From contig JBLDXI010000032.1 in NCBI GenBank assembly GCA_047495785.1, forward strand, positions 4,439,782 through 4,503,781: a DNA stretch of 64,000 bases, given 5' to 3'. How positions within the stretch are numbered: the stretch's first letter is position 1; each line of letters begins with the position of its first letter. Positions 38,717 to 61,540 of this stretch are shown here, in pieces. A model generated the notes under the pieces. That model was not told the DNA's origin. It worked only from the letters and a program-made list of their open reading frames with translations, and did no database searches. The translations under genes were made by a program, and so were the position numbers. This stretch comes from Lepidodermella squamata (lineage: Eukaryota; Animalia; Gastrotricha).

Positions 38717-41700
38717 ATGAGAAGTAAATCATTGGCCGATGTTTCTTCCGATCGTCCGATCTGTCGAAATCACTATCTGATCTCACACTCATCCCCAGCA
38801 GCAGTCTTCTCGATCGGAATCGAAGAGAAAGACGTCAAAAAATCATCAGATGGACTTCTGTTTGCAAGCATTGACGAGCCAAGAGCGGACGACTGCTTGC
38901 AGACGACTACTTTATTTGCTGAGCATGCGGCACTTACTGCTTGTAGTAGCAACTGTACTGCGGACTCTGTGGCTCGCCTGCGATTCATCGACTGTAGTAG
39001 CCAAGAACAGCCTAGTTCAACTGGCGAAAATGATAAGGCTGCAACACACGCAACACCTGATGAATGTCATCAATTCGCCGATGTTTCTTGCTCAGTGTTC
39101 ACTAGAGATAATCCCCTTCGCAAGGCCGCTGTCAGTCTCATCACATGGAAGTAAGTGTGTTCTGTCATTATAGCTGTCAACGAAATATTGTGATAACATA
39201 TAGTCCTAAGATTCGATAATAATATAACAACATTATAATTATATACAGGTGGTTTGAACGGTTGTCCATCGGAGTCATCGTGTTGAATTGCATCGCTTTG
39301 GGAATGGCGGACCCATGTGATATAAGCTGCTCCAGCCAACTCTGCCATATACTCCAACTCGTTGAACATGGCATCTTTGCATTTTTTGCAACCGAAATGC
39401 TCATGAAAATGGTTGCGATGGGTGTATTTGGCAAGACAGCCTACTTGGGCGATGGCTGGAACTGCTTCGATTGTTTTATCGTCCTGGTTGGAATCATCGA
39501 ATACATATTCATCAACGGCGAAATTAATTTCTCTGCTATCCGAGCTTTCAGGGTGTTCAGACCGCTCCGTGCTATTAACCGGATTCCTGGCCTTAGACTT
39601 TTAGTTACGCTTCTTCTTGACATACTTCCGATGCTCGGAAATGGTAGGAACATGATCGATTACATTGATATGTAAAATATCCTAAACTTGCCTTTATCCC
39701 ACGCAGTCTTGGTGTTCTGCTTTTTCATATTTTTCATTTTTGGAATCGGTGGCGTTCAGCTATGGTCAGGCACACTTCGCCACCGCTGCTTTTTTCCGAG
39801 GAACATTTCCGCTGGCCTCGAACCGCCCGGTTTTATGCCGCCTTACTATCGCACATCGCTGGCTGACTTTGTATGCTCTCCTGATAGCGGAATGTTTACC
39901 TGTGATCAAATCATGATTTTTGAGTGAGCCAACTTGAATCTTGTCACTTATAATAATGATGAAGCTTTTTTTCTCATCGATAAAATTTAGGACTAATCAT
40001 GAATCGATGTGCATGGAGCTATTCGACGGGCATCCTCGAGAATTTTCCGAGTGCCAACGCTGGGTTGGGAATTACACAGATTGTCGCGCCGAAGGCCCGA
40101 ATCCTCTTCAGGGCACCCTGAGCTTCGATAACATCGGATTCGCATGCATCGCAATATTTCAGGTGATATCACTCGAAGGGTGGGCTGAAATTATGTATTT
40201 GATGATGGTAATATATATATCAGAATAGCTTTCATTTGATAATAATGTTGGTTATCAATCAGGATTCTTACTCGTTCTGGGTATGGACTTATTTTGTGGC
40301 ACTGATCATGATCGGCTCTCAATTTGCCGTCAACCTTTGTCTCGTTGTGATTGCAACTCAATTCTCTGAAACAAAAAAGCGGGAGATGTCGAAAATGCGT
40401 CTCGAACGCCGCGCGAAAGCACTATCATTGTCAAGTATGGGCGATAGCAGTGTTATAGAGGAATCATCCACTTACAATCAAGTGCTTAACCTCATCAAAC
40501 ATTTCGCTCGCTTGAGTTATCGCCGCACTTTGACAGCTCTTAAAATCCGGCGATTAAACGCGCGCAACTCAGATTCAGATGGACAAGGCAAGCCATCACC
40601 GCGTAATACTGATCCGACCGTCGACCGCGATCAACAAGGAAATGACCGTTGCTCAATTCGAATGGAAGGTTTTTATTAGAATTTCGAATTTATTGACTTA
40701 ATTTATGTGGATTATGTGAATCGTCTTTAACGTTGTTTTAACGTATGTCATGTTAATTTTGTTTGTTCAGGCAAAAATTTTCAACTGCGAATGATGCTGC
40801 GAAGAGTCATCGAGCACAACATTGGCGTTGGCTTCATCGCTGGGGCGATTCTCGTAAACACTATTGTAATGGGTGCCGAACATCACAATCAGCCCGAGTC
40901 CTTTGCTCGGGCCATAGATATTTTGAACCTATTCTTCACCGTCTTTTTTACGGCAGAACTCATTGTGAAGCTTTACGCTTACGGGTTTTGCGGATTCATT
41001 CACGACGGATTCAACATGCTGGATTTGATCATAGTGATCTTAAAGTAAGCATTGCTGATTGTATCTGTTTTCATCTATCATCATTGATCTGAAATTCCAC
41101 AGCCTCGCAGAATTGCATCAGGGCAGTGATTCTCATCTATCAGTATTGAGGACATTTAGACTGGTGCGTGTGGTTAAGATTATTCGATTTCTACCATCGC
41201 TACAGCGCTCGCTAGTCGTCATGATGCGCACAGTCGATAACATAGCACCATTTTTCGTTATGCTGAGCTTCTTCCTCTACATATTCGCTCTTCTCGGGAT
41301 GTCGCTGTTTGGGTGCAAGTTCTGCCCTCAAGCCTCCTTACTTAACAACAATAACGCTTCTGATGTTGAGCGATTGGGTGAAATGATGCCGCATTCGATA
41401 AAGTGTCACTTGGCAGTTTTGCAGAATGAAAACCAAATCAACGATACAGTGATGCAAAACGCGTTAAAAGGCCACAGTTACAATTCACCTGCCATAATGC
41501 TCCAACAGCCTTGTCCGCGGTCGAATTTTGATTCTTTGCTTACCTCGTTGTTTACCGTTCTGCAAGTGTTCACTCAAGACGCTTGGTCGGCAGTTCTAAA
41601 GGACGGCATGAGAAATACTAACGATTACGCCAGTCTTTACTTTGTGGCACTCGTGACAATAGGAAACTACGTCATTTTCAATCTACTTGTCGCTATTTTG

Positions 41701-44700
41701 GTAGAAGGATTCGCGTCAGAAAACGTATGTGAATAAAACTTATAATATTTCGAGAACATTTTTAAAGCTAGCTGAATCTTTAGGACGCTGGGAGCCTCTC
41801 AGAGTTCACCGTCGATGTTCATTCCTTGTCAGTCTCGCATCGCGGATCGATAAGTGGATTAGAACGACATCAGCCGAGATACAAGAAATCAGGCGCTTTA
41901 TCTGGGAGAAAAAAGTTGAAGAAGCGTCGGAAGTCTCCTCCAATAATAACTATACAGGTGAGTCAGTATTTGTTTGTCATAATATGAGACCCATTTCACT
42001 TTCGAAACAACACTTTTACATACAGAACTTTGATAATCCAAGCGAGGAAGTCACCGTTTTCCATCCTAGAATCAGCGCAACATCATCAGCGACCACGCCT
42101 TCTTCACGTTCCGAGCCCTTTACTATAGCTCAGTTTGCCAGAGAAACACGCTCCAGAATCCTCGCTGCCATATTTCGTGTACAGCAAGTGATTCATGAGC
42201 GCAGAGATTACTCGCTTTTTCTCCTTTCACCTGAGAACAGTTTAAGAGCTTCACTTGTAGCGATGATCCAACATCCAGCATTTGACAACACAGTGCTTGT
42301 GTTCATTCTAATTAACTGCTGCCTCATCACTATCGAGCGTCCTTCTATTTCACCTGATAGTCTTGAAAGGCGAAATTTGGATGTTGCCAACTACGTTCTC
42401 AACTTCGTATTTGCAATGGAAGCAGCTGTTAAAATAATAGCTAGCGGTTTTGTCCTCTCGAAAGACTCGTATCTTCGATGTGGTTGGAACATTTTGGACT
42501 TCACGTTGATCAACTGCTCTACCATCCATACTGTTCTGACTCTGACCTCCTCTTTGGGCTCAGCTGAAACAAAAATATTAGAGATCTTCAGAGTGCTTAG
42601 AATTCTCCGCGCACTTCGTCCTCTTCGAGTTGTGAACAGAGCTCCCGGTTTGAAAATTGCTCTGGAGACTTTGATGGTTTCGATAAAACCAATAGGCAAC
42701 ATAATAATAATAACGATCGCATTCTTCTTCGTATTTGCGGTTCTTGGCTTGCAATTGTTCCGCGGCTGTTTCCACCAATGTCAGATACCTGAACTAGCAC
42801 CACACAACTCTTCGACTCCGCACATAACTAGTACTCGCAGTCATGGTGGCACGGTCGTCCCAAATAACGAAATCAATCAAGTAACACTACCAAATACAGC
42901 AACTGTGATGCCAGACGACAATGTTGGCGGACATACTGCTGATAAGAATTCGCTTGAACACAACTTCGACTTGCTGCAATCCGTGCGCAATAGAAGTGAT
43001 TGTGATAGTCTTGGATTCAATTGGGTTAATGAAGGATTCAATTTTGACGACCTGGCTAATTCACTGATGACCCTATTTGTTTTCGCAACTTTTGATGGCT
43101 GGGTTGAGATTACGTGGAATGGTGTTGACTGTGTTGGCGTCGACCAGCAGCCTATCGAAAACTACAATGGCTGGCGCGTGATATACTTCATCTCTTTTCT
43201 TCTTATCGTCTGCTTCTTTGTATGATTGCACAAGTACCGAAAATGCCATATTGGTAATGCTCTGTATTTCCAGATGCTCAACATGTTCGTTGGAGTTGTG
43301 GTTAACAATTTTCAAAAAGTTCAAAAGCGAGTTCATGCCGAGATGGAAGCAAAGCGAGAGGCGATACGTAAAGAGAAACTTTTGGCCCGGTTAACTCAGA
43401 AGAACCAGCGAACAAGAAGAGGTGAGTAGTTTTTCTTCTTCCTCCCTCTTATCTGTCTTTTGGACGCGCATGATTGATGTGACTAGCACTATGCAGCGAA
43501 GAATACTATTGAAATCGGTTAGTGTTGTTCCCCAATACACGGAACACGAAATTCCTTAAACGCTGCAACTCATGTACAAGTCATGCGAGTATTTTTTGAA
43601 ATTCTTTTGACAATTGAATATTTTTGTCAGAAATGTTCATTTCGATATTTCGGCGCAACCCTCGCAACCCATCTACTGCTACCAGCAACACGATGCCACT
43701 GACCACAGCAGATCAGAGCATTACCTATGCCGTTGTCCACGGCCAAGACGCCGATACGACTTGTCACGGGGACAGCTCATATTACCTGAGGTACCCACGG
43801 TGGCGAAGACTTCTGCATACGGTTGTCGTGTCTCGTTCGTTCGAGTTTGTAATAACATCGATAACTATAGCAACTATGGTGACTATGGCCATGGAGTTTC
43901 ACGCAATGCCGCATGAGATGCAGACAGCCATGCGAATTATTGCCTATATTTTCACGGGTTTTATCGTTACTGAATGCATTGTCAAGATTGTCGCACTCGG
44001 CCTAAAACACTATTTTGCGGACAGATGGAATAAGCTCGATTTCATGATTGTTGTTCTTTCGCTAGCCGGAATTGTCGTGGAGGAAATGTTGGACTTCAAT
44101 CCAACAATGATTCAACTGATACGAATTCTCCGCATTATTCGAGTATTGAAGCTGCTTAAATCAGCAGATGGCATTCGTCGACTGCTGAACACTGTATCCG
44201 AAGCACTGCCACAAGTAAAGCGAATTTCATATCCTCACTAAATTTCTTGAATTTTGTCATTTTCATTAGGTCGGAAACCTGGCTCTTTTGTTTTTGCTTC
44301 TTTTCTTCATCTACTCAGCTGTAGGCGTTGAGCTATTCGGCAAATACGACTGCAATTACATAATGTGCGAGGGATTGTCGCGTCATGCTAATTTTCAGCA
44401 TTTCGGGATGTCTCTACTGACGCTCTTTCGCATTTTCACCGGTGACAATTGGAATGGCATACTTAAAGACATGCTTAATTTCTCGAGCGATGAGCAATGC
44501 ATAGACATGATGAGGCCGCACATGGGCAGCAAACCAAATCAGGAGCAGAACGGTGTCAAGATCGAATGCGCCATTATTCACGTTCTCTCGCCGTTCTACT
44601 TTGTGTCCTTTGTTCTCATCTCCCAGTTTATTCTCATCAATGTCGTCATTGCTGTTCTGATGGGCTCCCTAGAAGGATCTCATTACTTCGAACGGGTTAA

Positions 44701-45807
44701 TGCAAAGAAAATTGGCGACGAAATTACAGAAAAAGTCGCTGTTCTAGAGGGAGTGCTAGCATCGGTTTGCCCGGAACTGGTATGTATATTTTAACCATTT
44801 CTTTCTTCTTTCCACTCTTTCATTTTGTCTCTGGTTTCGTGCATAGCCGTATAGTCGTGTAAGATAGCCCCGAATTTGCTTTTTCTAGCCAGCCATAGTG
44901 TCTATTGCCATTTGTACTCAGGTAACTACAATTTTGAACAGGAGGTACTATTTTGGACATTCCACGCATATTCTAAACGACGATATTATCTTTTTGCTTG
45001 TTAATCAAAATGGATATAGGATTATTGGAGAATTATCGTGAACAGTTGCGTGCGTCAAGTTTGATGAACAGGATATACATTGGCATTTCTTGAACTTGGA
45101 TTTATAAAGCTTTTTGTTTTCAGGTTGAGCGTTTGCAGAGCCAACTGCGAACCACACGAGACGAAGTTATCAGCCTAGTTTCAACCGAGTACGCCCTGCG
45201 GACCCCAATGTTGGGCGAAGTCCCGCGACATAACACGCTTCTAGCATCCATGGAAGAAATTCCTCAGCTCGAATCTAGTCACCAATCATTAGCTTCTAAT
45301 AGGAGCGGGCGACACTCACAGGCTTCTATTCATAATAGTACCACTGTCGGCGGTACCAACTCGCATGTTTCAAGTCAAATTGCTATCGATCAGAGCATAC
45401 TCGAAGAAGTGTTCGAAGATCTTTATCACGAGCTTACTTTTCCGGATCGAAGAATTCGAATCTCTGACCAAACAAGCGTTACTAGCCGATTTGTTCAAAT
45501 GAGAAGGCAGTCGTCGGTTGCATCAACCACCCTTGATAACAGCCGAGCGAACCGTCATCGAGAGCTGTCATTCAGCAGGTCTTGTTCTTCCGAAGCTCCG
45601 ACCGAACCTACTACAGCAAGACATCGAAGAAAACAAATGATTAGGAAGAAGCACGCTATTTTGGAGCCGAAGTTGTCTCTAAATCCCTCGCCTTCTAATC
45701 GTCAGCGAGAGTCACTTAGAAGGACACAAAGCGAGCCCGCTTCAGATCATTACAGCTCTTATTCAAGAGTTCTGCCAAAGCGCAAAAGCTGGGCAGAACA
45801 TTCATAA
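38717..45807 (+). CDS. Cav3: T-type voltage-gated calcium channel alpha-1 subunit (Cav3 family; multi-exon)
   Basis: Four S1-S6 repeats with S4 segments ([68 protein letters not shown]); Cav3-typical [18 protein letters not shown] and gating-brake helix; pores SLEGW, TQDAW, TFDGW, TGDNW; GCKFC...RSNFDSLL; [13 protein letters not shown]. Confidence 0.95.
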
Positions 45808-46846: not shown

Positions 46847-46931
46847 TAGGGTTAGGGTTAGGGTTAGGGTTAGGGTTAGGGTTAGGGTTAGGGTTAGGGT
46901 TAGGGTTAGGGTTAGGGTTAGGGTTAGGGTT
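46847..46931 (+). repeat. Telomeric repeat tract 1, (TTAGGG)~14
   Basis: Perfect TTAGGG hexamers with the G-rich strand running rightwards. Confidence 0.98.
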
Positions 46932-47267
46932 TTTAACTAATTTAATACAGACGAGCTGTAACCGGGGTTTCTCCTAAGAGAAACCAGCCGGGCCCTACCA
47001 TTACTCCTTTCAGGGCTGTTTCAGAGGTCTTGGCCGCAGAGATAATATTTGATAGAATCCTTGATTGGATTCTATGTTAAGTAAATGCAAGGCAATGCCT
47101 TGATTTGTAAATGAATGCAAGGCATTGCCTTGATTTATGAGTGATTTATAGGCCTCGGCCCATCACTTAGGAGCCTATGAAGGCTGAGATCACCATTAAG
47201 AGTGATCTGGTTTAACAAAAGTCCATAAAGGCTTTTTGTGATATCTCTCAGTGGTGTGGAAAACCAG

Positions 47268-47333
47268 GAGGTAGCCAGTTATCAGACGCGTTTCGCTACT
47301 TGGCTAAGGTAGCTCTTCAGTGATTTTTACCTC
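47268..47333 (-). ncRNA. Type I hammerhead ribozyme A
   Basis: gaggtaaaaATCA-CTGAAGA-GCTAC-cttagccaa-GTAGC-GAAA-CGCG-TC^TGATaactggctacctc; intact core; predicted cleavage between 47285 and 47284. Confidence 0.92.
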
Positions 47334-47345
47334 ACAAAATGAGAG

Positions 47346-47381
47346 AATGATTTCAGTCCTATATTATAACCTCTTTAAATA
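47346..47381 (-). promoter_or_regulatory. Putative Pol II core promoter of element A
   Basis: TATTTAAA at 47381-47374, 33 nt upstream of the initiator-like A in TGAAATCATT (47355-47346); same layout as element B. Confidence 0.6.
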
Positions 47382-47521
47382 GGGTCGTCGTTTGCCTTGT
47401 TGTTTATGTTTTATCGTACCAGATGTGGTGTCACGTGCATTTTCAATTGTGTATGTCCACGTGTTGTTCACGCTGAGCGAAGTTCAAAGTTATTTTTGTC
47501 ACTTCTTTGTTGTCCTGATTT

Positions 47522-48248
47522 GATCGATCTGGAACCTTTGTCATTGGCCGTACATGTTTTTTGACCACATATTCGTGATAAGCAGACTCGATTTGACTAT
47601 TTCCATGTGATTTATCGAGAAATGCCTGGAGATCCGAAGAATTATGAAATTATTTGAAATGCCAAACGGCAAATTTCGGAACGCAAAATAGGTCATTTGG
47701 GATCGATCTGGAACCTTTGTCATTGGCCGTACATGTTTTTTGACCACATATTCGTGATAAGCAGACTCGATTTGACTATTTCCATGTGATTTATCGAGAA
47801 ATGCCTGGAGATCCGAAGAATTATGAAATTATTTGAAATGCCAAACGGCAAATTTCGGAACGCAAAATAGGTCATTTGGGATCGATCTGGAACCTTTGTC
47901 ATTGGCCGTACATGTTTTTTGACCACATATTCGTGATAAGCAGACTCGATTTGACTATTTCCATGTGATTTATCGAGAAATGCCTGGAGATCCGAAGAAT
48001 TATGAAATTATTTGAAATGCCAAACGGCAAATTTCGGAACGCAAAATAGGTCATTTGGGATCGATCTGGAACCTTTGTCATTGGCCGTACATGTTTTTTG
48101 ACCACATATTCGTGATAAGCAGACTCGATTTGACTATTTCCATGTGATTTATCGAGAAATGCCTGGAGATCCGAAGAATTATGAAATTATTTGAAATGCC
48201 AAACGGCAAATTTCGGAACTGAAAATAGGTCATTTGGGATCGATCTGG
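47522..48248. repeat. 179-bp tandem satellite, four copies plus 11 bp
   Basis: Units begin GATCGATCTGGAACC at 47522, 47701, 47880, 48059 and (truncated) 48238; only a 2-nt difference seen, in copy 4. Confidence 0.97.
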
Positions 48249-48268
48249 GGTTAGGGTTAGGGTTAGGG

Positions 48269-48309
<41 letters not shown>

Positions 48310-48320
48310 GGTTAGTTAGG
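48248..48320 (+). repeat. Telomeric repeat tract 2, (TTAGGG)~11 with one TTTAGGG variant
   Basis: Direct reading; merges into GTTAGGGTTAGTTAGG, the start of element B. Confidence 0.97.
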
Positions 48321-48918
48321 AGAGAATTACCAGACAGGTAGCCTAAGCACCCCGGCAGTTAGCTCTAATGCTACTAGAGAGCCAGGCCTGCATTTCAATA
48401 GCTTTAGCCCTATCCGAGGATAGGGATAGGGATAGGGATAGGGATAGAGATGGAGATGGAGATAGAGGTGCAGGTTAAATTCACGGTTTTAACCGCCTCT
48501 GACATGACACTGTGCTATTCAATAGCAAGAACTCAATTACCGTCTCAAAAGGGTACACTTCTGATGTAGGGATGAGATGAGGTCGTGATAAAGATTCGAT
48601 TTATCAAGTCTCATGCCTCAACAACGCGTTCAATCCTTTCCCTTTTGGCTTCATTCAATGAGCCACAATTGTAAATTCTTTTATTACCATCTCGTAAATC
48701 TCTGGTAGGTAGGTGGATGGTTACAACTCACTAAACATTGTAAAAGCCACCCCTATAGGGAAGCAAATTACAAATGGCAACCCATATAGGGAAGCATGAC
48801 TGGAAAGGCCACCCATGAAGGGAAGCAGATACAAATAGCAGCCTTTGCAAGGCTCTCGATGTGGTTAATCGAAAATAATAAGCAAACACCCTGTAAACAG
48901 TGATCATTAATGACAAAT

Positions 48919-48990
48919 AGCAACAACCCGAAAAAAACGTCAGACCGGTTTCGCCTGTGGGTAGCAGGCTCATCAGTGACTTTCGTTGCT
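48919..48990 (-). ncRNA. Type I hammerhead ribozyme B, copy 1
   Basis: agcaacgaaaGTCA-CTGATGA-GCCTG-ctaccca-CAGGC-GAAA-CCGG-TC^TGACgtttttttcgggttgttgct; predicted cleavage between 48943 and 48942. Confidence 0.93.
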
Positions 48991-49017
48991 TTCTTTGCTA
49001 GAAATAAAAGCTGGATA

Positions 49018-49052
49018 AATGATTTCAATGCAGTTTTTAGTGTGCTTTTATA
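49018..49052 (-). promoter_or_regulatory. Putative Pol II core promoter of element B (repeated in every unit)
   Basis: TATAAAAG at 49052-49045, 32 nt upstream of the A in TGAAATCATT (49027-49018); upstream AAAATGGCGG and GCCACGTGGC. Confidence 0.65.
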
Positions 49053-50523
49053 ACAGAAGTAGCACCGCCATTTTTTTCCCTTTCTACTAGCGCCACGTGG
49101 CATTAAGGCGCGAGAATTCGACCTTGGACTTTGACCTTGCTCTATTTTATAGCTATAGAGATAGAGATAGAGATAGGGATAGGGATAGAGATAGAGATAG
49201 AGATATGGTTAGAGATGGGGATATGGATAGGGATAGAGTTAGGGATGAAACCCTAAAAACTCTCACATGTCGATCCGATGTTTCCTTTCGCGTGAATATC
49301 AAATAAGATCAGATCAATGGCTAGTTCACTCAGAGTTCTCCACGGTGTCGTGCACAATAACAGCAATGTTTATTTGCTTTACAACGATGATACCAGTTCG
49401 ATTCCAACAGCGAATCTCTCCACCCTTGTATTGTCTTCAGATATTTCCCTTGTTGTTGACCGATTACTAAATCACTCTCCGCGGAGTTGATTATCACAAC
49501 GCTGCATTTCCACGTCAGCAGTTAAGAACATGCTGACACTGATTAATCGTTTTGACCACTAATAGCAAAACAATAATTCTTCCGACGGCAAGTCACCGGA
49601 CTAGATCCGAGAAAGTATGTTCTAAGCTAGCTATCGTTGATCTTTTACGTCCAACGGGGATCCCTGATCACGTTCCGAGTCTAAGATTCCTGAGAAACGT
49701 GTTCATTCGAAGCGATGGAGTAGGCGATGCAACAAAGGAACTAGTAGAAGTTCATACGATTTAAACATGAGAATGCCACTAACTAAATTTAGGGCTCAGA
49801 ATGTGTGCCTGTCAGGAAATAAACTTGCAGCAGAAGGGAGGACCCATACGTTTCATTGAAAGTAGGCAAGGCCGCTCGTTTGCACCGTACTCATGACTCG
49901 AGCTCAAATGTTAGGGTTAGTTAGGAGAGAATTACCAGACAGGTAGCCTAAGCACCCCGGCAGTTAGCTCTAATGCTACTAGAGAGCCAGGCCTGCATTT
50001 CAATAGCTTTAGCCCTATCCGAGGATAGGGATAGGGATAGGGATAGGGATAGAGATGGAGATGGAGATAGAGGTGCAGGTTAAATTCACGGTTTTAACCG
50101 CCTCTGACATGACACTGTGCTATTCAATAGCAAGAACTCAATTACCGTCTCAAAAGGGTACACTTCTGATGTAGGGATGAGATGAGGTCGTGATAAAGAT
50201 TCGATTTATCAAGTCTCATGCCTCAACAACGCGTTCAATCCTTTCCCTTTTGGCTTCATTCAATGAGCCACAATTGTAAATTCTTTTATTACCATCTCGT
50301 AAATCTCTGGTAGGTAGGTGGATGGTTACAACTCACTAAACATTGTAAAAGCCACCCCTATAGGGAAGCAAATTACAAATGGCAACCCATATAGGGAAGC
50401 ATGACTGGAAAGGCCACCCATGAAGGGAAGCAGATACAAATAGCAGCCTTTGCAAGGCTCTCGATGTGGTTAATCGAAAATAATAAGCAAACACCCTGTA
50501 AACAGTGATCATTAATGACAAAT

Positions 50524-50595
50524 AGCAACAACCCGAAAAAAACGTCAGACCGGTTTCGCCTGTGGGTAGCAGGCTCATCAGTGACTTTCGTTGCT
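50524..50595 (-). ncRNA. Hammerhead ribozyme B, copy 2
   Basis: Same sequence as copy 1, +1605. Confidence 0.92.
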
Positions 50596-52128
50596 TTCTT
50601 TGCTAGAAATAAAAGCTGGATAAATGATTTCAATGCAGTTTTTAGTGTGCTTTTATAACAGAAGTAGCACCGCCATTTTTTTCCCTTTCTACTAGCGCCA
50701 CGTGGCATTAAGGCGCGAGAATTCGACCTTGGACTTTGACCTTGCTCTATTTTATAGCTATAGAGATAGAGATAGAGATAGGGATAGGGATAGAGATAGA
50801 GATAGAGATATGGTTAGAGATGGGGATATGGATAGGGATAGAGTTAGGGATGAAACCCTAAAAACTCTCACATGTCGATCCGATGTTTCCTTTCGCGTGA
50901 ATATCAAATAAGATCAGATCAATGGCTAGTTCACTCAGAGTTCTCCACGGTGTCGTGCACAATAACAGCAATGTTTATTTGCTTTACAACGATGATACCA
51001 GTTCGATTCCAACAGCGAATCTCTCCACCCTTGTATTGTCTTCAGATATTTCCCTTGTTGTTGACCGATTACTAAATCACTCTCCGCGGAGTTGATTATC
51101 ACAACGCTGCATTTCCACGTCAGCAGTTAAGAACATGCTGACACTGATTAATCGTTTTGACCACTAATAGCAAAACAATAATTCTTCCGACGGCAAGTCA
51201 CCGGACTAGATCCGAGAAAGTATGTTCTAAGCTAGCTATCGTTGATCTTTTACGTCCAACGGGGATCCCTGATCACGTTCCGAGTCTAAGATTCCTGAGA
51301 AACGTGTTCATTCGAAGCGATGGAGTAGGCGATGCAACAAAGGAACTAGTAGAAGTTCATACGATTTAAACATGAGAATGCCACTAACTAAATTTAGGGC
51401 TCAGAATGTGTGCCTGTCAGGAAATAAACTTGCAGCAGAAGGGAGGACCCATACGTTTCATTGAAAGTAGGCAAGGCCGCTCGTTTGCACCGTACTCATG
51501 ACTCGAGCTCAAATGTTAGGGTTAGTTAGGAGAGAATTACCAGACAGGTAGCCTAAGCACCCCGGCAGTTAGCTCTAATGCTACTAGAGAGCCAGGCCTG
51601 CATTTCAATAGCTTTAGCCCTATCCGAGGATAGGGATAGGGATAGGGATAGGGATAGAGATGGAGATGGAGATAGAGGTGCAGGTTAAATTCACGGTTTT
51701 AACCGCCTCTGACATGACACTGTGCTATTCAATAGCAAGAACTCAATTACCGTCTCAAAAGGGTACACTTCTGATGTAGGGATGAGATGAGGTCGTGATA
51801 AAGATTCGATTTATCAAGTCTCATGCCTCAACAACGCGTTCAATCCTTTCCCTTTTGGCTTCATTCAATGAGCCACAATTGTAAATTCTTTTATTACCAT
51901 CTCGTAAATCTCTGGTAGGTAGGTGGATGGTTACAACTCACTAAACATTGTAAAAGCCACCCCTATAGGGAAGCAAATTACAAATGGCAACCCATATAGG
52001 GAAGCATGACTGGAAAGGCCACCCATGAAGGGAAGCAGATACAAATAGCAGCCTTTGCAAGGCTCTCGATGTGGTTAATCGAAAATAATAAGCAAACACC
52101 CTGTAAACAGTGATCATTAATGACAAAT

Positions 52129-52200
52129 AGCAACAACCCGAAAAAAACGTCAGACCGGTTTCGCCTGTGGGTAGCAGGCTCATCAGTGACTTTCGTTGCT
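52129..52200 (-). ncRNA. Hammerhead ribozyme B, copy 3
   Basis: Same sequence as copy 1. Confidence 0.92.
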
Positions 52201-53733
52201 TTCTTTGCTAGAAATAAAAGCTGGATAAATGATTTCAATGCAGTTTTTAGTGTGCTTTTATAACAGAAGTAGCACCGCCATTTTTTTCCCTTTCTACTAG
52301 CGCCACGTGGCATTAAGGCGCGAGAATTCGACCTTGGACTTTGACCTTGCTCTATTTTATAGCTATAGAGATAGAGATAGAGATAGGGATAGGGATAGAG
52401 ATAGAGATAGAGATATGGTTAGAGATGGGGATATGGATAGGGATAGAGTTAGGGATGAAACCCTAAAAACTCTCACATGTCGATCCGATGTTTCCTTTCG
52501 CGTGAATATCAAATAAGATCAGATCAATGGCTAGTTCACTCAGAGTTCTCCACGGTGTCGTGCACAATAACAGCAATGTTTATTTGCTTTACAACGATGA
52601 TACCAGTTCGATTCCAACAGCGAATCTCTCCACCCTTGTATTGTCTTCAGATATTTCCCTTGTTGTTGACCGATTACTAAATCACTCTCCGCGGAGTTGA
52701 TTATCACAACGCTGCATTTCCACGTCAGCAGTTAAGAACATGCTGACACTGATTAATCGTTTTGACCACTAATAGCAAAACAATAATTCTTCCGACGGCA
52801 AGTCACCGGACTAGATCCGAGAAAGTATGTTCTAAGCTAGCTATCGTTGATCTTTTACGTCCAACGGGGATCCCTGATCACGTTCCGAGTCTAAGATTCC
52901 TGAGAAACGTGTTCATTCGAAGCGATGGAGTAGGCGATGCAACAAAGGAACTAGTAGAAGTTCATACGATTTAAACATGAGAATGCCACTAACTAAATTT
53001 AGGGCTCAGAATGTGTGCCTGTCAGGAAATAAACTTGCAGCAGAAGGGAGGACCCATACGTTTCATTGAAAGTAGGCAAGGCCGCTCGTTTGCACCGTAC
53101 TCATGACTCGAGCTCAAATGTTAGGGTTAGTTAGGAGAGAATTACCAGACAGGTAGCCTAAGCACCCCGGCAGTTAGCTCTAATGCTACTAGAGAGCCAG
53201 GCCTGCATTTCAATAGCTTTAGCCCTATCCGAGGATAGGGATAGGGATAGGGATAGGGATAGAGATGGAGATGGAGATAGAGGTGCAGGTTAAATTCACG
53301 GTTTTAACCGCCTCTGACATGACACTGTGCTATTCAATAGCAAGAACTCAATTACCGTCTCAAAAGGGTACACTTCTGATGTAGGGATGAGATGAGGTCG
53401 TGATAAAGATTCGATTTATCAAGTCTCATGCCTCAACAACGCGTTCAATCCTTTCCCTTTTGGCTTCATTCAATGAGCCACAATTGTAAATTCTTTTATT
53501 ACCATCTCGTAAATCTCTGGTAGGTAGGTGGATGGTTACAACTCACTAAACATTGTAAAAGCCACCCCTATAGGGAAGCAAATTACAAATGGCAACCCAT
53601 ATAGGGAAGCATGACTGGAAAGGCCACCCATGAAGGGAAGCAGATACAAATAGCAGCCTTTGCAAGGCTCTCGATGTGGTTAATCGAAAATAATAAGCAA
53701 ACACCCTGTAAACAGTGATCATTAATGACAAAT

Positions 53734-53805
53734 AGCAACAACCCGAAAAAAACGTCAGACCGGTTTCGCCTGTGGGTAGCAGGCTCATCAGTGACTTTCG
53801 TTGCT
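53734..53805 (-). ncRNA. Hammerhead ribozyme B, copy 4
   Basis: Same sequence as copy 1. Confidence 0.92.
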
Positions 53806-55338
53806 TTCTTTGCTAGAAATAAAAGCTGGATAAATGATTTCAATGCAGTTTTTAGTGTGCTTTTATAACAGAAGTAGCACCGCCATTTTTTTCCCTTTCT
53901 ACTAGCGCCACGTGGCATTAAGGCGCGAGAATTCGACCTTGGACTTTGACCTTGCTCTATTTTATAGCTATAGAGATAGAGATAGAGATAGGGATAGGGA
54001 TAGAGATAGAGATAGAGATATGGTTAGAGATGGGGATATGGATAGGGATAGAGTTAGGGATGAAACCCTAAAAACTCTCACATGTCGATCCGATGTTTCC
54101 TTTCGCGTGAATATCAAATAAGATCAGATCAATGGCTAGTTCACTCAGAGTTCTCCACGGTGTCGTGCACAATAACAGCAATGTTTATTTGCTTTACAAC
54201 GATGATACCAGTTCGATTCCAACAGCGAATCTCTCCACCCTTGTATTGTCTTCAGATATTTCCCTTGTTGTTGACCGATTACTAAATCACTCTCCGCGGA
54301 GTTGATTATCACAACGCTGCATTTCCACGTCAGCAGTTAAGAACATGCTGACACTGATTAATCGTTTTGACCACTAATAGCAAAACAATAATTCTTCCGA
54401 CGGCAAGTCACCGGACTAGATCCGAGAAAGTATGTTCTAAGCTAGCTATCGTTGATCTTTTACGTCCAACGGGGATCCCTGATCACGTTCCGAGTCTAAG
54501 ATTCCTGAGAAACGTGTTCATTCGAAGCGATGGAGTAGGCGATGCAACAAAGGAACTAGTAGAAGTTCATACGATTTAAACATGAGAATGCCACTAACTA
54601 AATTTAGGGCTCAGAATGTGTGCCTGTCAGGAAATAAACTTGCAGCAGAAGGGAGGACCCATACGTTTCATTGAAAGTAGGCAAGGCCGCTCGTTTGCAC
54701 CGTACTCATGACTCGAGCTCAAATGTTAGGGTTAGTTAGGAGAGAATTACCAGACAGGTAGCCTAAGCACCCCGGCAGTTAGCTCTAATGCTACTAGAGA
54801 GCCAGGCCTGCATTTCAATAGCTTTAGCCCTATCCGAGGATAGGGATAGGGATAGGGATAGGGATAGAGATGGAGATGGAGATAGAGGTGCAGGTTAAAT
54901 TCACGGTTTTAACCGCCTCTGACATGACACTGTGCTATTCAATAGCAAGAACTCAATTACCGTCTCAAAAGGGTACACTTCTGATGTAGGGATGAGATGA
55001 GGTCGTGATAAAGATTCGATTTATCAAGTCTCATGCCTCAACAACGCGTTCAATCCTTTCCCTTTTGGCTTCATTCAATGAGCCACAATTGTAAATTCTT
55101 TTATTACCATCTCGTAAATCTCTGGTAGGTAGGTGGATGGTTACAACTCACTAAACATTGTAAAAGCCACCCCTATAGGGAAGCAAATTACAAATGGCAA
55201 CCCATATAGGGAAGCATGACTGGAAAGGCCACCCATGAAGGGAAGCAGATACAAATAGCAGCCTTTGCAAGGCTCTCGATGTGGTTAATCGAAAATAATA
55301 AGCAAACACCCTGTAAACAGTGATCATTAATGACAAAT

Positions 55339-55410
55339 AGCAACAACCCGAAAAAAACGTCAGACCGGTTTCGCCTGTGGGTAGCAGGCTCATCAGTGAC
55401 TTTCGTTGCT
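55339..55410 (-). ncRNA. Hammerhead ribozyme B, copy 5
   Basis: Same sequence as copy 1. Confidence 0.92.
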
Positions 55411-56943
55411 TTCTTTGCTAGAAATAAAAGCTGGATAAATGATTTCAATGCAGTTTTTAGTGTGCTTTTATAACAGAAGTAGCACCGCCATTTTTTTCCC
55501 TTTCTACTAGCGCCACGTGGCATTAAGGCGCGAGAATTCGACCTTGGACTTTGACCTTGCTCTATTTTATAGCTATAGAGATAGAGATAGAGATAGGGAT
55601 AGGGATAGAGATAGAGATAGAGATATGGTTAGAGATGGGGATATGGATAGGGATAGAGTTAGGGATGAAACCCTAAAAACTCTCACATGTCGATCCGATG
55701 TTTCCTTTCGCGTGAATATCAAATAAGATCAGATCAATGGCTAGTTCACTCAGAGTTCTCCACGGTGTCGTGCACAATAACAGCAATGTTTATTTGCTTT
55801 ACAACGATGATACCAGTTCGATTCCAACAGCGAATCTCTCCACCCTTGTATTGTCTTCAGATATTTCCCTTGTTGTTGACCGATTACTAAATCACTCTCC
55901 GCGGAGTTGATTATCACAACGCTGCATTTCCACGTCAGCAGTTAAGAACATGCTGACACTGATTAATCGTTTTGACCACTAATAGCAAAACAATAATTCT
56001 TCCGACGGCAAGTCACCGGACTAGATCCGAGAAAGTATGTTCTAAGCTAGCTATCGTTGATCTTTTACGTCCAACGGGGATCCCTGATCACGTTCCGAGT
56101 CTAAGATTCCTGAGAAACGTGTTCATTCGAAGCGATGGAGTAGGCGATGCAACAAAGGAACTAGTAGAAGTTCATACGATTTAAACATGAGAATGCCACT
56201 AACTAAATTTAGGGCTCAGAATGTGTGCCTGTCAGGAAATAAACTTGCAGCAGAAGGGAGGACCCATACGTTTCATTGAAAGTAGGCAAGGCCGCTCGTT
56301 TGCACCGTACTCATGACTCGAGCTCAAATGTTAGGGTTAGTTAGGAGAGAATTACCAGACAGGTAGCCTAAGCACCCCGGCAGTTAGCTCTAATGCTACT
56401 AGAGAGCCAGGCCTGCATTTCAATAGCTTTAGCCCTATCCGAGGATAGGGATAGGGATAGGGATAGGGATAGAGATGGAGATGGAGATAGAGGTGCAGGT
56501 TAAATTCACGGTTTTAACCGCCTCTGACATGACACTGTGCTATTCAATAGCAAGAACTCAATTACCGTCTCAAAAGGGTACACTTCTGATGTAGGGATGA
56601 GATGAGGTCGTGATAAAGATTCGATTTATCAAGTCTCATGCCTCAACAACGCGTTCAATCCTTTCCCTTTTGGCTTCATTCAATGAGCCACAATTGTAAA
56701 TTCTTTTATTACCATCTCGTAAATCTCTGGTAGGTAGGTGGATGGTTACAACTCACTAAACATTGTAAAAGCCACCCCTATAGGGAAGCAAATTACAAAT
56801 GGCAACCCATATAGGGAAGCATGACTGGAAAGGCCACCCATGAAGGGAAGCAGATACAAATAGCAGCCTTTGCAAGGCTCTCGATGTGGTTAATCGAAAA
56901 TAATAAGCAAACACCCTGTAAACAGTGATCATTAATGACAAAT

Positions 56944-57015
56944 AGCAACAACCCGAAAAAAACGTCAGACCGGTTTCGCCTGTGGGTAGCAGGCTCATCA
57001 GTGACTTTCGTTGCT
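56944..57015 (-). ncRNA. Hammerhead ribozyme B, copy 6
   Basis: Same sequence as copy 1. Confidence 0.92.
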
Positions 57016-58548
57016 TTCTTTGCTAGAAATAAAAGCTGGATAAATGATTTCAATGCAGTTTTTAGTGTGCTTTTATAACAGAAGTAGCACCGCCATTTTT
57101 TTCCCTTTCTACTAGCGCCACGTGGCATTAAGGCGCGAGAATTCGACCTTGGACTTTGACCTTGCTCTATTTTATAGCTATAGAGATAGAGATAGAGATA
57201 GGGATAGGGATAGAGATAGAGATAGAGATATGGTTAGAGATGGGGATATGGATAGGGATAGAGTTAGGGATGAAACCCTAAAAACTCTCACATGTCGATC
57301 CGATGTTTCCTTTCGCGTGAATATCAAATAAGATCAGATCAATGGCTAGTTCACTCAGAGTTCTCCACGGTGTCGTGCACAATAACAGCAATGTTTATTT
57401 GCTTTACAACGATGATACCAGTTCGATTCCAACAGCGAATCTCTCCACCCTTGTATTGTCTTCAGATATTTCCCTTGTTGTTGACCGATTACTAAATCAC
57501 TCTCCGCGGAGTTGATTATCACAACGCTGCATTTCCACGTCAGCAGTTAAGAACATGCTGACACTGATTAATCGTTTTGACCACTAATAGCAAAACAATA
57601 ATTCTTCCGACGGCAAGTCACCGGACTAGATCCGAGAAAGTATGTTCTAAGCTAGCTATCGTTGATCTTTTACGTCCAACGGGGATCCCTGATCACGTTC
57701 CGAGTCTAAGATTCCTGAGAAACGTGTTCATTCGAAGCGATGGAGTAGGCGATGCAACAAAGGAACTAGTAGAAGTTCATACGATTTAAACATGAGAATG
57801 CCACTAACTAAATTTAGGGCTCAGAATGTGTGCCTGTCAGGAAATAAACTTGCAGCAGAAGGGAGGACCCATACGTTTCATTGAAAGTAGGCAAGGCCGC
57901 TCGTTTGCACCGTACTCATGACTCGAGCTCAAATGTTAGGGTTAGTTAGGAGAGAATTACCAGACAGGTAGCCTAAGCACCCCGGCAGTTAGCTCTAATG
58001 CTACTAGAGAGCCAGGCCTGCATTTCAATAGCTTTAGCCCTATCCGAGGATAGGGATAGGGATAGGGATAGGGATAGAGATGGAGATGGAGATAGAGGTG
58101 CAGGTTAAATTCACGGTTTTAACCGCCTCTGACATGACACTGTGCTATTCAATAGCAAGAACTCAATTACCGTCTCAAAAGGGTACACTTCTGATGTAGG
58201 GATGAGATGAGGTCGTGATAAAGATTCGATTTATCAAGTCTCATGCCTCAACAACGCGTTCAATCCTTTCCCTTTTGGCTTCATTCAATGAGCCACAATT
58301 GTAAATTCTTTTATTACCATCTCGTAAATCTCTGGTAGGTAGGTGGATGGTTACAACTCACTAAACATTGTAAAAGCCACCCCTATAGGGAAGCAAATTA
58401 CAAATGGCAACCCATATAGGGAAGCATGACTGGAAAGGCCACCCATGAAGGGAAGCAGATACAAATAGCAGCCTTTGCAAGGCTCTCGATGTGGTTAATC
58501 GAAAATAATAAGCAAACACCCTGTAAACAGTGATCATTAATGACAAAT

Positions 58549-58620
58549 AGCAACAACCCGAAAAAAACGTCAGACCGGTTTCGCCTGTGGGTAGCAGGCT
58601 CATCAGTGACTTTCGTTGCT
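58549..58620 (-). ncRNA. Hammerhead ribozyme B, copy 7
   Basis: Same sequence as copy 1. Confidence 0.92.
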
Positions 58621-60153
58621 TTCTTTGCTAGAAATAAAAGCTGGATAAATGATTTCAATGCAGTTTTTAGTGTGCTTTTATAACAGAAGTAGCACCGCCA
58701 TTTTTTTCCCTTTCTACTAGCGCCACGTGGCATTAAGGCGCGAGAATTCGACCTTGGACTTTGACCTTGCTCTATTTTATAGCTATAGAGATAGAGATAG
58801 AGATAGGGATAGGGATAGAGATAGAGATAGAGATATGGTTAGAGATGGGGATATGGATAGGGATAGAGTTAGGGATGAAACCCTAAAAACTCTCACATGT
58901 CGATCCGATGTTTCCTTTCGCGTGAATATCAAATAAGATCAGATCAATGGCTAGTTCACTCAGAGTTCTCCACGGTGTCGTGCACAATAACAGCAATGTT
59001 TATTTGCTTTACAACGATGATACCAGTTCGATTCCAACAGCGAATCTCTCCACCCTTGTATTGTCTTCAGATATTTCCCTTGTTGTTGACCGATTACTAA
59101 ATCACTCTCCGCGGAGTTGATTATCACAACGCTGCATTTCCACGTCAGCAGTTAAGAACATGCTGACACTGATTAATCGTTTTGACCACTAATAGCAAAA
59201 CAATAATTCTTCCGACGGCAAGTCACCGGACTAGATCCGAGAAAGTATGTTCTAAGCTAGCTATCGTTGATCTTTTACGTCCAACGGGGATCCCTGATCA
59301 CGTTCCGAGTCTAAGATTCCTGAGAAACGTGTTCATTCGAAGCGATGGAGTAGGCGATGCAACAAAGGAACTAGTAGAAGTTCATACGATTTAAACATGA
59401 GAATGCCACTAACTAAATTTAGGGCTCAGAATGTGTGCCTGTCAGGAAATAAACTTGCAGCAGAAGGGAGGACCCATACGTTTCATTGAAAGTAGGCAAG
59501 GCCGCTCGTTTGCACCGTACTCATGACTCGAGCTCAAATGTTAGGGTTAGTTAGGAGAGAATTACCAGACAGGTAGCCTAAGCACCCCGGCAGTTAGCTC
59601 TAATGCTACTAGAGAGCCAGGCCTGCATTTCAATAGCTTTAGCCCTATCCGAGGATAGGGATAGGGATAGGGATAGGGATAGAGATGGAGATGGAGATAG
59701 AGGTGCAGGTTAAATTCACGGTTTTAACCGCCTCTGACATGACACTGTGCTATTCAATAGCAAGAACTCAATTACCGTCTCAAAAGGGTACACTTCTGAT
59801 GTAGGGATGAGATGAGGTCGTGATAAAGATTCGATTTATCAAGTCTCATGCCTCAACAACGCGTTCAATCCTTTCCCTTTTGGCTTCATTCAATGAGCCA
59901 CAATTGTAAATTCTTTTATTACCATCTCGTAAATCTCTGGTAGGTAGGTGGATGGTTACAACTCACTAAACATTGTAAAAGCCACCCCTATAGGGAAGCA
60001 AATTACAAATGGCAACCCATATAGGGAAGCATGACTGGAAAGGCCACCCATGAAGGGAAGCAGATACAAATAGCAGCCTTTGCAAGGCTCTCGATGTGGT
60101 TAATCGAAAATAATAAGCAAACACCCTGTAAACAGTGATCATTAATGACAAAT

Positions 60154-60225
60154 AGCAACAACCCGAAAAAAACGTCAGACCGGTTTCGCCTGTGGGTAGC
60201 AGGCTCATCAGTGACTTTCGTTGCT
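60154..60225 (-). ncRNA. Hammerhead ribozyme B, copy 8
   Basis: Same sequence as copy 1. Confidence 0.92.
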
Positions 60226-61540
60226 TTCTTTGCTAGAAATAAAAGCTGGATAAATGATTTCAATGCAGTTTTTAGTGTGCTTTTATAACAGAAGTAGCAC
60301 CGCCATTTTTTTCCCTTTCTACTAGCGCCACGTGGCATTAAGGCGCGAGAATTCGACCTTGGACTTTGACCTTGCTCTATTTTATAGCTATAGAGATAGA
60401 GATAGAGATAGGGATAGGGATAGAGATAGAGATAGAGATATGGTTAGAGATGGGGATATGGATAGGGATAGAGTTAGGGATGAAACCCTAAAAACTCTCA
60501 CATGTCGATCCGATGTTTCCTTTCGCGTGAATATCAAATAAGATCAGATCAATGGCTAGTTCACTCAGAGTTCTCCACGGTGTCGTGCACAATAACAGCA
60601 ATGTTTATTTGCTTTACAACGATGATACCAGTTCGATTCCAACAGCGAATCTCTCCACCCTTGTATTGTCTTCAGATATTTCCCTTGTTGTTGACCGATT
60701 ACTAAATCACTCTCCGCGGAGTTGATTATCACAACGCTGCATTTCCACGTCAGCAGTTAAGAACATGCTGACACTGATTAATCGTTTTGACCACTAATAG
60801 CAAAACAATAATTCTTCCGACGGCAAGTCACCGGACTAGATCCGAGAAAGTATGTTCTAAGCTAGCTATCGTTGATCTTTTACGTCCAACGGGGATCCCT
60901 GATCACGTTCCGAGTCTAAGATTCCTGAGAAACGTGTTCATTCGAAGCGATGGAGTAGGCGATGCAACAAAGGAACTAGTAGAAGTTCATACGATTTAAA
61001 CATGAGAATGCCACTAACTAAATTTAGGGCTCAGAATGTGTGCCTGTCAGGAAATAAACTTGCAGCAGAAGGGAGGACCCATACGTTTCATTGAAAGTAG
61101 GCAAGGCCGCTCGTTTGCACCGTACTCATGACTCGAGCTCAAATGTTAGGGTTAGTTAGGAGAGAATTACCAGACAGGTAGCCTAAGCACCCCGGCAGTT
61201 AGCTCTAATGCTACTAGAGAGCCAGGCCTGCATTTCAATAGCTTTAGCCCTATCCGAGGATAGGGATAGGGATAGGGATAGGGATAGAGATGGAGATGGA
61301 GATAGAGGTGCAGGTTAAATTCACGGTTTTAACCGCCTCTGACATGACACTGTGCTATTCAATAGCAAGAACTCAATTACCGTCTCAAAAGGGTACACTT
61401 CTGATGTAGGGATGAGATGAGGTCGTGATAAAGATTCGATTTATCAAGTCTCATGCCTCAACAACGCGTTCAATCCTTTCCCTTTTGGCTTCATTCAATG
61501 AGCCACAATTGTAAATTCTTTTATTACCATCTCGTAAATC

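Follow-up and report, generated by a model that had tools for sequence, protein, structure and literature searches.

Endonuclease-free Penelope-like elements attach to the G-overhangs of chromosome ends through reverse-complement telomeric repeats plus a hammerhead (PMC8557442, PMC6431247), and in Terminons the hammerhead directly adjoins the telomere-complementary repeats (PMC6431247). Where helix III is short and palindromic, Penelope-like and newt-type hammerheads work as dimers (PMC4209133, PMC7229834, PMC6765202), including the newt and axolotl satellite hammerheads of Forster 1988 and Lunse 2016 as relayed by PMC6765202, and in vitro the Penelope-like ones cleave weakly, even when dimeric (PMC4209133). 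Animal non-LTR retrozymes are noncoding repeats in tandem, every one carrying a type I hammerhead, for which processing to unit-length, circularisable RNA and mobilisation by a Penelope-like reverse transcriptase have been proposed (PMC7229834; bioRxiv 10.64898/2026.07.22.740005). Hammerheads often have pseudoknots joining stems I and II and need them for speed, and a contact between the stem II loop and stem I is predicted for about 40% of them, across all three types (PMC3088659). Palindromic helix III, dimer action, families set apart by compensatory changes, and stem I/II pseudoknots are all already published.

The window (the whole 64,000-nt stretch of Lepidodermella squamata DNA that was analysed) carries two hammerhead-bearing elements, A and B, joined to telomeric tracts, with the following features:

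46847–46931, plus strand: (TTAGGG)14 tract, situated about 1 kb past the last ORF of a host ion-channel gene, with element A joined to it
46932–48247, minus strand: element A, 1316 bp, no ORF over 68 aa
47268–47333, minus strand: hammerhead A, extended motif of 66 nt, C17 at 47285, predicted cut between 47285 and 47284
48248–48315, plus strand: (TTAGGG)11 tract, capping element A, with array B joined to it
48316–61547, minus strand: array B, a 1605-bp unit repeated head to tail 8.25 times with 100% identity, no ORF over 111 aa
48919–48990, minus strand: hammerhead B, extended motif of 72 nt, C17 at 48943, predicted cut between 48943 and 48942
50524–60225, minus strand: hammerhead B seven more times, identical in sequence, once in each 1605-bp unit
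61541–63983, plus strand: inverted 1.5-unit copy of array B, beginning at the telomere-proximal unit end
62490–62561, plus strand: hammerhead B once more, identical, within the inverted part of the array

In both elements the hammerhead lies on the C-rich strand, which is the sense strand and has its 3' end joined to a TTAGGG tract (junctions at 46931/46932 for A and 48315/48316 for B) and its 5' end toward the chromosome tip. Both elements follow (TTAGGG)n tracts and are oriented as endonuclease-free Penelope-like elements should be after addition to a telomere, a setting that the earlier note had missed. Read in RNA sense, element A consists of 4.1 copies of a 179-bp satellite (47522–48248), about 190 nt, hammerhead A and a final 353 nt; it is cut within the satellite at its 5' end, where TTAGGG repeats form a cap from 48248, and ends 3' in AUUAAA...AAAAA adjoining the telomere tract. 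In array B, a short telomere-like motif (GTTAGGGTTAG on the plus strand) persists at every unit junction, the unit retains an internal telomere-complementary motif (CUAACCCUAAC), and the hammerhead lies 626 nt upstream of the junction motif in RNA sense. Hammerhead A is thus separated from its telomere junction by 353 nt and hammerhead B by 626 nt. No second hammerhead core was found beside either junction; a GAAAC near 46975 was considered as one and rejected, as it belongs to a plain hairpin. There is no reverse transcriptase gene in the window: the ORFs within elements A and B reach at most 111 aa, and the large ORFs nearby are those of the ion-channel gene.

Like Athena, Coprina and Terminon elements, A and B are chained head-to-tail on chromosome ends with the C-rich strand as sense, have 5' ends capped by short telomeric tracts (A at 48248), show a reverse-complement telomeric motif at the 3' junction, and carry the hammerhead in the 3' part of the element. 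Unlike them, A and B are without a reverse transcriptase ORF, the repeat is TTAGGG and not TGTGGG or TGAGGG, the hammerheads lie 353–626 nt from the telomere-complementary end, and B forms a long array of identical units. With animal non-LTR retrozymes, B shares its noncoding, tandem organisation of eight direct units, whereas A is single copy; however, the B unit measures 1605 bp as against 170–400 bp for retrozyme units, which are expressed as linear and circular RNA, and array B begins at a telomere tract, on the internal telomere-complementary motif.

Both hammerheads have a complete type I core (C3 U4 G5 A6 N7 G8 A9, G12 A13 A14, A15.1-U16.1 and a non-G at position 17), flanked by stem II and an open-ended stem I, with G10.1-C11.1 closing stem II and N7 being A in motif A and U in motif B. 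Motif A combines a proximal stem I of AUCA/UGAU, the core CUGAAGA, a stem II of GCUAC/GUAGC closing the 9-nt loop CUUAGCCAA, GAA, the helix III palindrome ACGCGU and then C17, and its predicted 3' product starts at 47284. The corresponding parts of motif B are GUCA/UGAC, CUGAUGA, GCCUG/CAGGC closing the 7-nt loop CUACCCA, GAA, ACCGGU and C17, with a predicted 3' product starting at 48942. Past an asymmetric internal loop, stem I continues in a distal 6-bp helix (GAGGUA/UACCUC in A, AGCAAC/GUUGCU in B). All sequence features listed in the earlier note were recovered on the minus strand at their given places, and both of its hammerheads are indeed complete type I motifs; what the note missed is that B is no single site and recurs every 1605 bp. 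The seven further direct copies have core starts at 50553, 52158, 53763, 55368, 56973, 58578 and 60183, giving eight direct copies with minus-strand core starts from 48948 to 60183, and one inverted copy starts at 62504.

A and B resemble the hammerheads of Penelope-like elements and of newt and axolotl retrozymes (Cervera and de la Pena 2014, PMC4209133; 2020, PMC7229834) in being type I with an intact core and G10.1-C11.1. Like the Penelope-like and newt hammerheads, they have a helix III cut to 1–2 bp plus a palindromic loop, which implies double-hammerhead action, and they form several families in one genome set apart by compensatory changes, B being tandem. The palindromic positions 15.2-16.2 and loop 3 of the Penelope-like motifs are present in both ACGCGU and ACCGGU. 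The "min-HHR" consensus has a helix II of 7–8 bp and a bulge, an unpaired base between positions 9 and 10.1, whereas in A and B stem II is 5 bp long and position 9 is followed directly by 10.1. Among the motifs of Cervera and de la Pena (2014, PMC4209133), it is the "less atypical" variants, those whose palindromic helix III is small, that A and B match. They further differ from the Penelope-like and newt hammerheads in a stem I made of 4 bp, an internal loop and a 6-bp distal helix, and in host elements that encode nothing and sit on telomere tracts; nor do they lie, as Penelope-like-element hammerheads do, in the terminal repeat of an element encoding a Penelope-type reverse transcriptase. 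Both motifs are genuine type I hammerheads of the dimer-dependent kind found in metazoans, with catalysis predicted from the sequence. They belong to a kind familiar from Penelope-like retroelements, are ordinary examples of it, and reveal no new ribozyme class or principle.

The motifs exceed chance expectation. The pattern CTGANGA..GAAAC has 10 matches in the window against 1.3 expected, and a strict descriptor (the core, G10.1-C11.1 in stem II, an A....U palindrome of 6 nt, any base but G at 17, and four base pairs in stem I) also has 10 matches, of two distinct sequences, against none in 300 dinucleotide shuffles. Rfam gave no match at gathering score over the whole window, RF00163 and the other models of clan CL00010 included, and at E<=10 over 3.3 kb returned only chance matches to miRNA, snoRNA and riboswitch models. 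When about 100 nt were searched, Hammerhead_1 aligned end to end with motif A at 10.5 bits against a gathering score of 34, Hammerhead_3 reached 14.7 against 48.5 and RAGATH-1-hammerhead 18 against 56.3; the matches of motif B to the Rfam hammerhead models were weak and far under threshold. Single-strand minimum-free-energy (MFE) folding did not recover the hammerhead in either motif (z-scores −0.01 and −0.36), and cofolding placed the double-hammerhead fold 7–10 kcal/mol above the dimer MFE. That nearest-neighbour folding does not favour the hammerhead fold is usual for hammerheads, and it gives no support here. The read, pattern and collection searches used flanking sequence, with the TTAGGG tracts excluded. 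A pattern scan of metagenomes gave 15 loci, all rejected as chance matches without stems on apparently bacterial contigs, and the same scan for further copies in a viral collection gave none. The ORF of 111 aa overlying hammerhead B has no entry on record. A run search for this stretch returned a single DNA run (X1), probably the source of the assembly, and no RNA run.

Within one molecule, helix III consists only of A15.1-U16.1 and a palindromic tetraloop, which falls short of a stable one-molecule helix III. Between two molecules, each palindrome pairs with itself over 6 bp (A:A −8.9 and B:B −9.7 kcal/mol) and not with the other (A with B, −1.8 kcal/mol), a point absent from the earlier note. 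The dependence on dimers that the earlier note had proposed is consistent with this anatomy, 1 bp within a molecule against a 6-bp self-duplex, and with the literature. Its suggestion of tandem copies in one transcript suits B, with eight direct copies 1605 nt apart, but not A, which is solitary here; as the A palindrome does not pair with that of B, A would need a second A RNA. Loop II is also complementary to the 3' strand of the stem I internal loop, as GCCA/UGGC in A, extending to 6 nt (UAGCCA/UGGCUA), and as ACCC/GGGU in B. The pairing described in the earlier note is therefore present, and it occupies one register in both motifs, lying 1 nt from loop II's 3' end and abutting the distal helix; its co-variation is only moderately supported, by two sequences. 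The pseudoknot-stabilised hammerheads of Perreault et al. (2011, PMC3088659) likewise have a Watson-Crick contact of at least 4 bp from the stem II loop to stem I. A and B depart from those in that loop II would pair with an internal loop, on its 3' strand, within an open stem I, and in a domain-swapped dimer the predicted contact would form in trans.

All 12 stem pairs are standard in each sequence, and 5 of the 12 differ between A and B, always on both sides, with no one-sided change and no broken pair; for stems I and II alone, all 9 pairs are standard in both and 4 have changed on both sides. When pairing partners were slid by 1–3 columns as a control, 18–30% of cells paired. The hammerhead, with 74% identity over 47 nt, is the sole similarity between the two elements. 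Moreover, at least 10 other contigs of run X1 match just 48939–48991, with 2–5 differences and unlike flanks. Compared beyond the match by 30-nt loose ends only, the B-like copies keep both distal stem I strands (AGCAAC, GUUGCU) and the adjoining GGGU, and an A-like copy keeps GGCUACCUC. The motifs could instead be decaying relics that look conserved from young copies alone, and the nine B copies, being 100% identical, carry no information on selection. However, although A and B differ by 26% inside the motif and cannot be aligned beyond it, compensation accompanies each change in the stems and the core has stayed intact, and the other contigs have just the motif in common; we therefore find the relic reading very improbable. 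The earlier proposal that selection keeps the hammerhead fold is supported by this comparison (similarity confined to the motif, 5 of 5 changes compensated, X1 contigs sharing the motif alone), and there is good comparative evidence for such selection in telomere-stacked, protein-less retroelements. The loop II complement is a closer case. It may not be a tertiary contact at all but a chance 4-mer in B and, in A, an internal direct repeat offering a competing inactive fold, a reading to which we give somewhat short of an even chance. Against random flanks the complement has P of about 0.016 in A and about 0.09 in B, rising to 0.34 in B with a shuffled loop, and there are just two independent sequences. 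In A, GCUACCU occurs twice, and both the monomer and the dimer MFE use UAGCCA/UGGCUA as an ordinary helix that replaces the hammerhead fold. The stem I 3' strand of A can pair with the stem II 3' strand as well, so the 6-nt complement may be a competing fold and not a tertiary contact. On the other hand, the register is identical in A and B, 2 of the 4 loop pairs have changed on both sides with none broken, and B-like copies with a diverged linker still keep GGGU beside the distal helix. The topology, too, is that of a normal H-type pseudoknot stacked on stem II, and cross-family pairing is weak (−4.4 and −1.6 kcal/mol, against −8.3 and −6.2 within families).

In our view, the hammerheads of A and B are probably the one conserved module each of different protein-less retroelements, copied onto a chromosome end in the manner of endonuclease-free Penelope-like elements, the motifs being genuine, type I and dimer-dependent. 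Two RNAs or tandem copies of the same family would pair via the self-complementary helix III into a domain-swapped double hammerhead, and the 4-bp Watson-Crick contact from loop II to the 3' strand of the stem I internal loop would help keep stems I and II parallel. Cutting after C17 at each site would release unit-length RNA with 5'-OH and 2',3'-cyclic phosphate ends, and the 1605-nt units of B may be ligated into circles or left multimeric. A reverse transcriptase acting in trans would then copy B RNA, with a telomeric G-overhang priming on the internal CUAACCCUAAC motif, which would explain why array B starts there. Points that count against this reading are the Rfam scores far under threshold, the weak in vitro cleavage of Penelope-like hammerheads (PMC4209133), the result that the window has no reverse transcriptase gene, and the 353 and 626 nt between hammerheads and telomere junctions, unlike in Terminons (PMC6431247). 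Alternatively, the hammerhead could serve as a structural tag, a 3'-region fold by which a Penelope-type reverse transcriptase recognises the RNA or the RNA is presented to the telomere, with cleavage incidental or rare. About 960 nt of element A lie upstream of the cut site, so that reverse transcription went through its own hammerhead and the template was uncut, and every internal junction of array B was likewise copied through a hammerhead. Furthermore, the in vitro cleavage of Penelope-like hammerheads is poor (PMC4209133), and Arkhipova and Yushenova see the fold as exposing telomere-complementary repeats (PMC6431247). However, the catalytic core nucleotides and C17 are all intact in both divergent copies, which speaks against a mere protein-binding fold, as this would not need them, and the motif here does not adjoin the telomere-complementary 3' end. 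A purely structural role therefore seems unlikely to us, and we retain the preferred reading of a dimer-dependent module copied onto the chromosome end.

The two families provide a clean natural comparison, unrelated save for an extended hammerhead of about 70 nt in which every stem difference is compensated, and their host is an animal with TTAGGG telomeres. For bench work, they suggest as hypotheses family-specific dimerisation via the helix III palindrome and a pseudoknot possibly formed in trans. A more speculative extension, which we consider doubtful, is that each family has a private address, made up of its helix III (ACGCGU or ACCGGU) and its own-family pseudoknot, such that cutting occurs within the family only and B passes through a circle copied by rolling-circle reverse transcription. 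If true, one rolling-circle event, G-overhang-primed on CUAACCCUAAC, would lay down all 8.25 identical B units, and retrozyme circles would be linked to telomere-primed, endonuclease-free reverse transcription of the Penelope type. The perfect identity of the units could also stem from amplification at the DNA level, which weighs against our preferred explanation. The direct and inverted parts of array B join at a 7-bp overlap (61541–61547) that contains CTGGTA.

The observation made in the earlier note, that the window carries two divergent type I hammerhead ribozymes, is confirmed: both are complete and lie on the minus strand, with all of the listed stems, cores and palindromes in place. 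The 5' ends predicted for the downstream products, 47284 (A) and 48942 (B), agree with the predicted cut-site nucleotides (C17) at 47285 and 48943. Read from the sequence, the two motifs are composed as follows.

Hammerhead A, 47333 down to 47268, minus strand, 66 nt: distal stem I helix GAGGUA/UACCUC; internal loop with AAA on the 5' side and AACUGGC on the 3' side; proximal stem I AUCA/UGAU; core CUGAAGA; stem II GCUAC/GUAGC, closing loop CUUAGCCAA; 3' part GAA, then ACGCGU, then C17 at 47285.
Hammerhead B, 48990 down to 48919, minus strand, 72 nt: distal stem I helix AGCAAC/GUUGCU; internal loop with GAAA on the 5' side and 14 nt on the 3' side; proximal stem I GUCA/UGAC; core CUGAUGA; stem II GCCUG/CAGGC, closing loop CUACCCA; 3' part GAA, then ACCGGU, then C17 at 48943.

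Hammerhead motifs occur in the window far beyond chance. The bare core pattern matched 10 times against 1.3 expected, and a fuller descriptor, which adds a 4-bp stem I, a stem II that includes G10.1-C11.1, a palindrome of 6 nt (A....U) and any base but G at position 17, found the identical 10 sites in the window and none in 300 dinucleotide shuffles. With the minimal motifs aligned, 12/12 standard pairs form in A and in B; at five of them both bases differ (stem II contributes three, stem I one and the palindrome centre one) and 0/12 differ on one side only, while in a control with partners slid by 1–3 columns just 18–30% of cells pair. The sole alignment between the repeats that carry them, element A and array B, joins 47282-47327 with 48940-48983 (74% over 47 nt), and the hammerhead is the only thing common to both. 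Only one public run, of DNA, contains this stretch; it is probably the assembly source and therefore not independent. Against its contigs the B unit gives one homogeneous contig, interrupted only at microsatellites, and at least 10 further contigs match 48939-48991 only, with 2–5 differences and both flanks unlike. Three of these contigs retain, in 30-nt loose ends, the distal helix's 5' strand as far as 48990; in other such ends, one B-like copy has UGAC followed by a changed 7-nt linker, GGGGU and UGUUGCU, and one A-like copy retains GGCUACCUC. From these matches and loose ends, the conserved module is the extended hammerhead, whose limit is set by the distal helix of stem I.

Both repeats adjoin telomere tracts, the first of which lies ~1 kb beyond the end of a cation-channel gene, and neither element A nor the array B unit has an ORF >111 aa.

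41059-45807, plus strand: four-domain voltage-gated cation-channel gene (five long ORFs, together four Ion_trans domains)
46847-46931, plus strand: (TTAGGG)14
46932-48247, plus-strand coordinates: element A
47522-48248: 179-bp satellite forming the 5' part of element A (4.1 copies at 99% identity)
48248-48315, plus strand: (TTAGGG)11
from 48316, plus-strand coordinates: start of array B after (TTAGGG)11
48305-61547: array B, head-to-tail 1605-bp units, 100% identity
61541-63983: inverted copy of array B, 1.5 units, beginning at the unit's telomere-proximal end

Hammerhead B is not single: identical copies are spaced 1605 bp apart, eight in all on the minus strand, with one more in inverted orientation. 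The array turns into its own reverse complement via a 7-bp overlap (61541-61547) containing CTGGTA, and beyond 63983 unrelated sequence runs to the window end. Penelope-like elements typically show an inverted truncated copy beside a tandem (PMC8557442), and the inverted copy could be a real one of this type; a template switch or folding back in the assembly could also account for it. A short telomere-like motif is kept at every B unit junction, and in element A the telomere tract at 48248 ends the satellite mid-unit. Because both hammerheads sit on the C-rich sense strand, element RNA would terminate in telomere-complementary sequence attached to the G-strand, its 5' end facing outward. This layout, including the capping of a 5'-truncated element, is that of endonuclease-free Penelope-like elements, which have a telomere-complementary end on the G-strand and the 5' end outward, and whose 5'-truncated elements are capped by new telomeric repeats (PMC8557442, PMC6431247).

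The earlier note's interpretation, that selection maintains catalysis and that cleavage may depend on tandem copies, is partly supported. In a single molecule, helix III is limited to A15.1-U16.1 and a palindromic tetraloop (CGCG or CCGG), a weakness shared with newt and axolotl satellite hammerheads and many Penelope-like element hammerheads, whose cleavage is poor in the monomer and improves in the dimer (PMC7229834, PMC4209133, PMC6765202). When two copies meet, the palindrome forms 6 bp, with computed energies of -8.9 kcal/mol (A:A) and -9.7 kcal/mol (B:B); A with B reaches only -1.8 kcal/mol, since the two central positions clash. Domain-swapped and fully nested, the double hammerhead has a nearest-neighbour energy of -27.3 (A) and -35.3 (B) kcal/mol, 7–10 kcal/mol above the cofold optimum; as such models omit core tertiary contacts, these values count neither for nor against it. 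Cleavage through tandem copies in one transcript would suit B, with partners 1605 nt away, but A is solitary in the window and would need a second A RNA.

For the co-varying pairing of loop II with stem I, the complements are present, GCCA/UGGC in A and ACCC/GGGU in B, and the statistics are moderate. The A complement reaches 6 nt, UAGCCA/UGGCUA (P 0.016 against random genomic flank, 0.007 against shuffled loop), and that of B 4 nt (P 0.09 and 0.34). The register is identical, with one A between the loop tetramer and the stem II closure and the tetramer's partner adjoining the distal stem I helix, in B when a G-U pair is counted; in this register both bases are replaced in two of the four pairs (G-C to A-U, A-U to C-G), and all four pairs stay intact. 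Duplexes within a family reach -8.3 kcal/mol for A and -6.2 kcal/mol for B, those across families -4.4 and -1.6 kcal/mol. The A 3' strand repeats GCUACCU of stem II, which lets these bases pair in competing helices, and minimum-free-energy folds use UAGCCA/UGGCUA as a plain helix. In topology the pairing matches a standard H-type pseudoknot, with stacking on stem II; stem I–stem II pseudoknots, predicted for ~40% of hammerheads, are published and have been tested by mutation (PMC3088659), and even if real the contact is of an already known kind.

The motif and its conservation, the tandem array, and the telomere junctions with their orientation are directly evident, and a mechanism can be proposed around them. 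The C-rich strand would be transcribed, same-family copies would pair through helix III, cleavage after C17 would yield unit-length RNA, and a Penelope-type enzyme supplied in trans might reverse-transcribe it with the telomeric overhang as primer. Array B starts at an internal telomere-complementary motif, away from the cut site, and every junction reads through the hammerhead, so the template was either an uncut multimer or a circle; this also supports a rival reading in which the fold is chiefly a structural tag.

Among known systems, core and stems fit the type I hammerhead of Rfam, and neither A nor B reaches the gathering scores of its hammerhead models. Palindromic helix III and G10.1-C11.1 recall the 'min-HHR' of Penelope-like elements, whereas the absence of a base between 9 and 10.1 and the 5-bp stem II do not. 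Telomere attachment and capping resemble Terminons, yet both elements are without reverse transcriptase, and the hammerhead lies 353 (A) or 626 nt (B) from the telomere-complementary end rather than adjacent to it (PMC6431247). Non-coding tandem units with a hammerhead in each are also seen in animal non-LTR retrozymes, although the unit here is 1605 bp compared with 170–400 bp (PMC7229834). A and B would work in the manner of the dimer-dependent type I hammerheads known from Penelope-like elements and animal retrozymes, and are best grouped with them.

The RNA-sense end of element A (46932-46960) has AUUAAA and, 8 nt on, AAAAA immediately abutting the CCCUAA tract, resembling a poly(A) signal with a short tail; B instead has its own telomere-complementary motif. 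Between hammerhead A and the element's 3' end, a perfect inverted repeat has arms of 15 nt that stand 15 nt apart (47088-47132) and are nearly palindromic themselves (CAAGGCA.TGCCTTG). This repeat may fold as a hairpin or offer another site for RNA-RNA dimerisation, and causes weak miRNA-model matches in Rfam. Each B unit holds microsatellites of GGGATA/GAGATA type (48418-48467, 49155-49246), one base off the telomere repeat GGGTTA, and three 31-bp repeats lie within the unit at 48749-48840. Elsewhere in the window, a GC-rich segment of ~500–600 bp recurs at 78–89% identity (2051-2576, 4319-4926, 8109-8372, 10364-10968), with overlapping ORFs on both strands.
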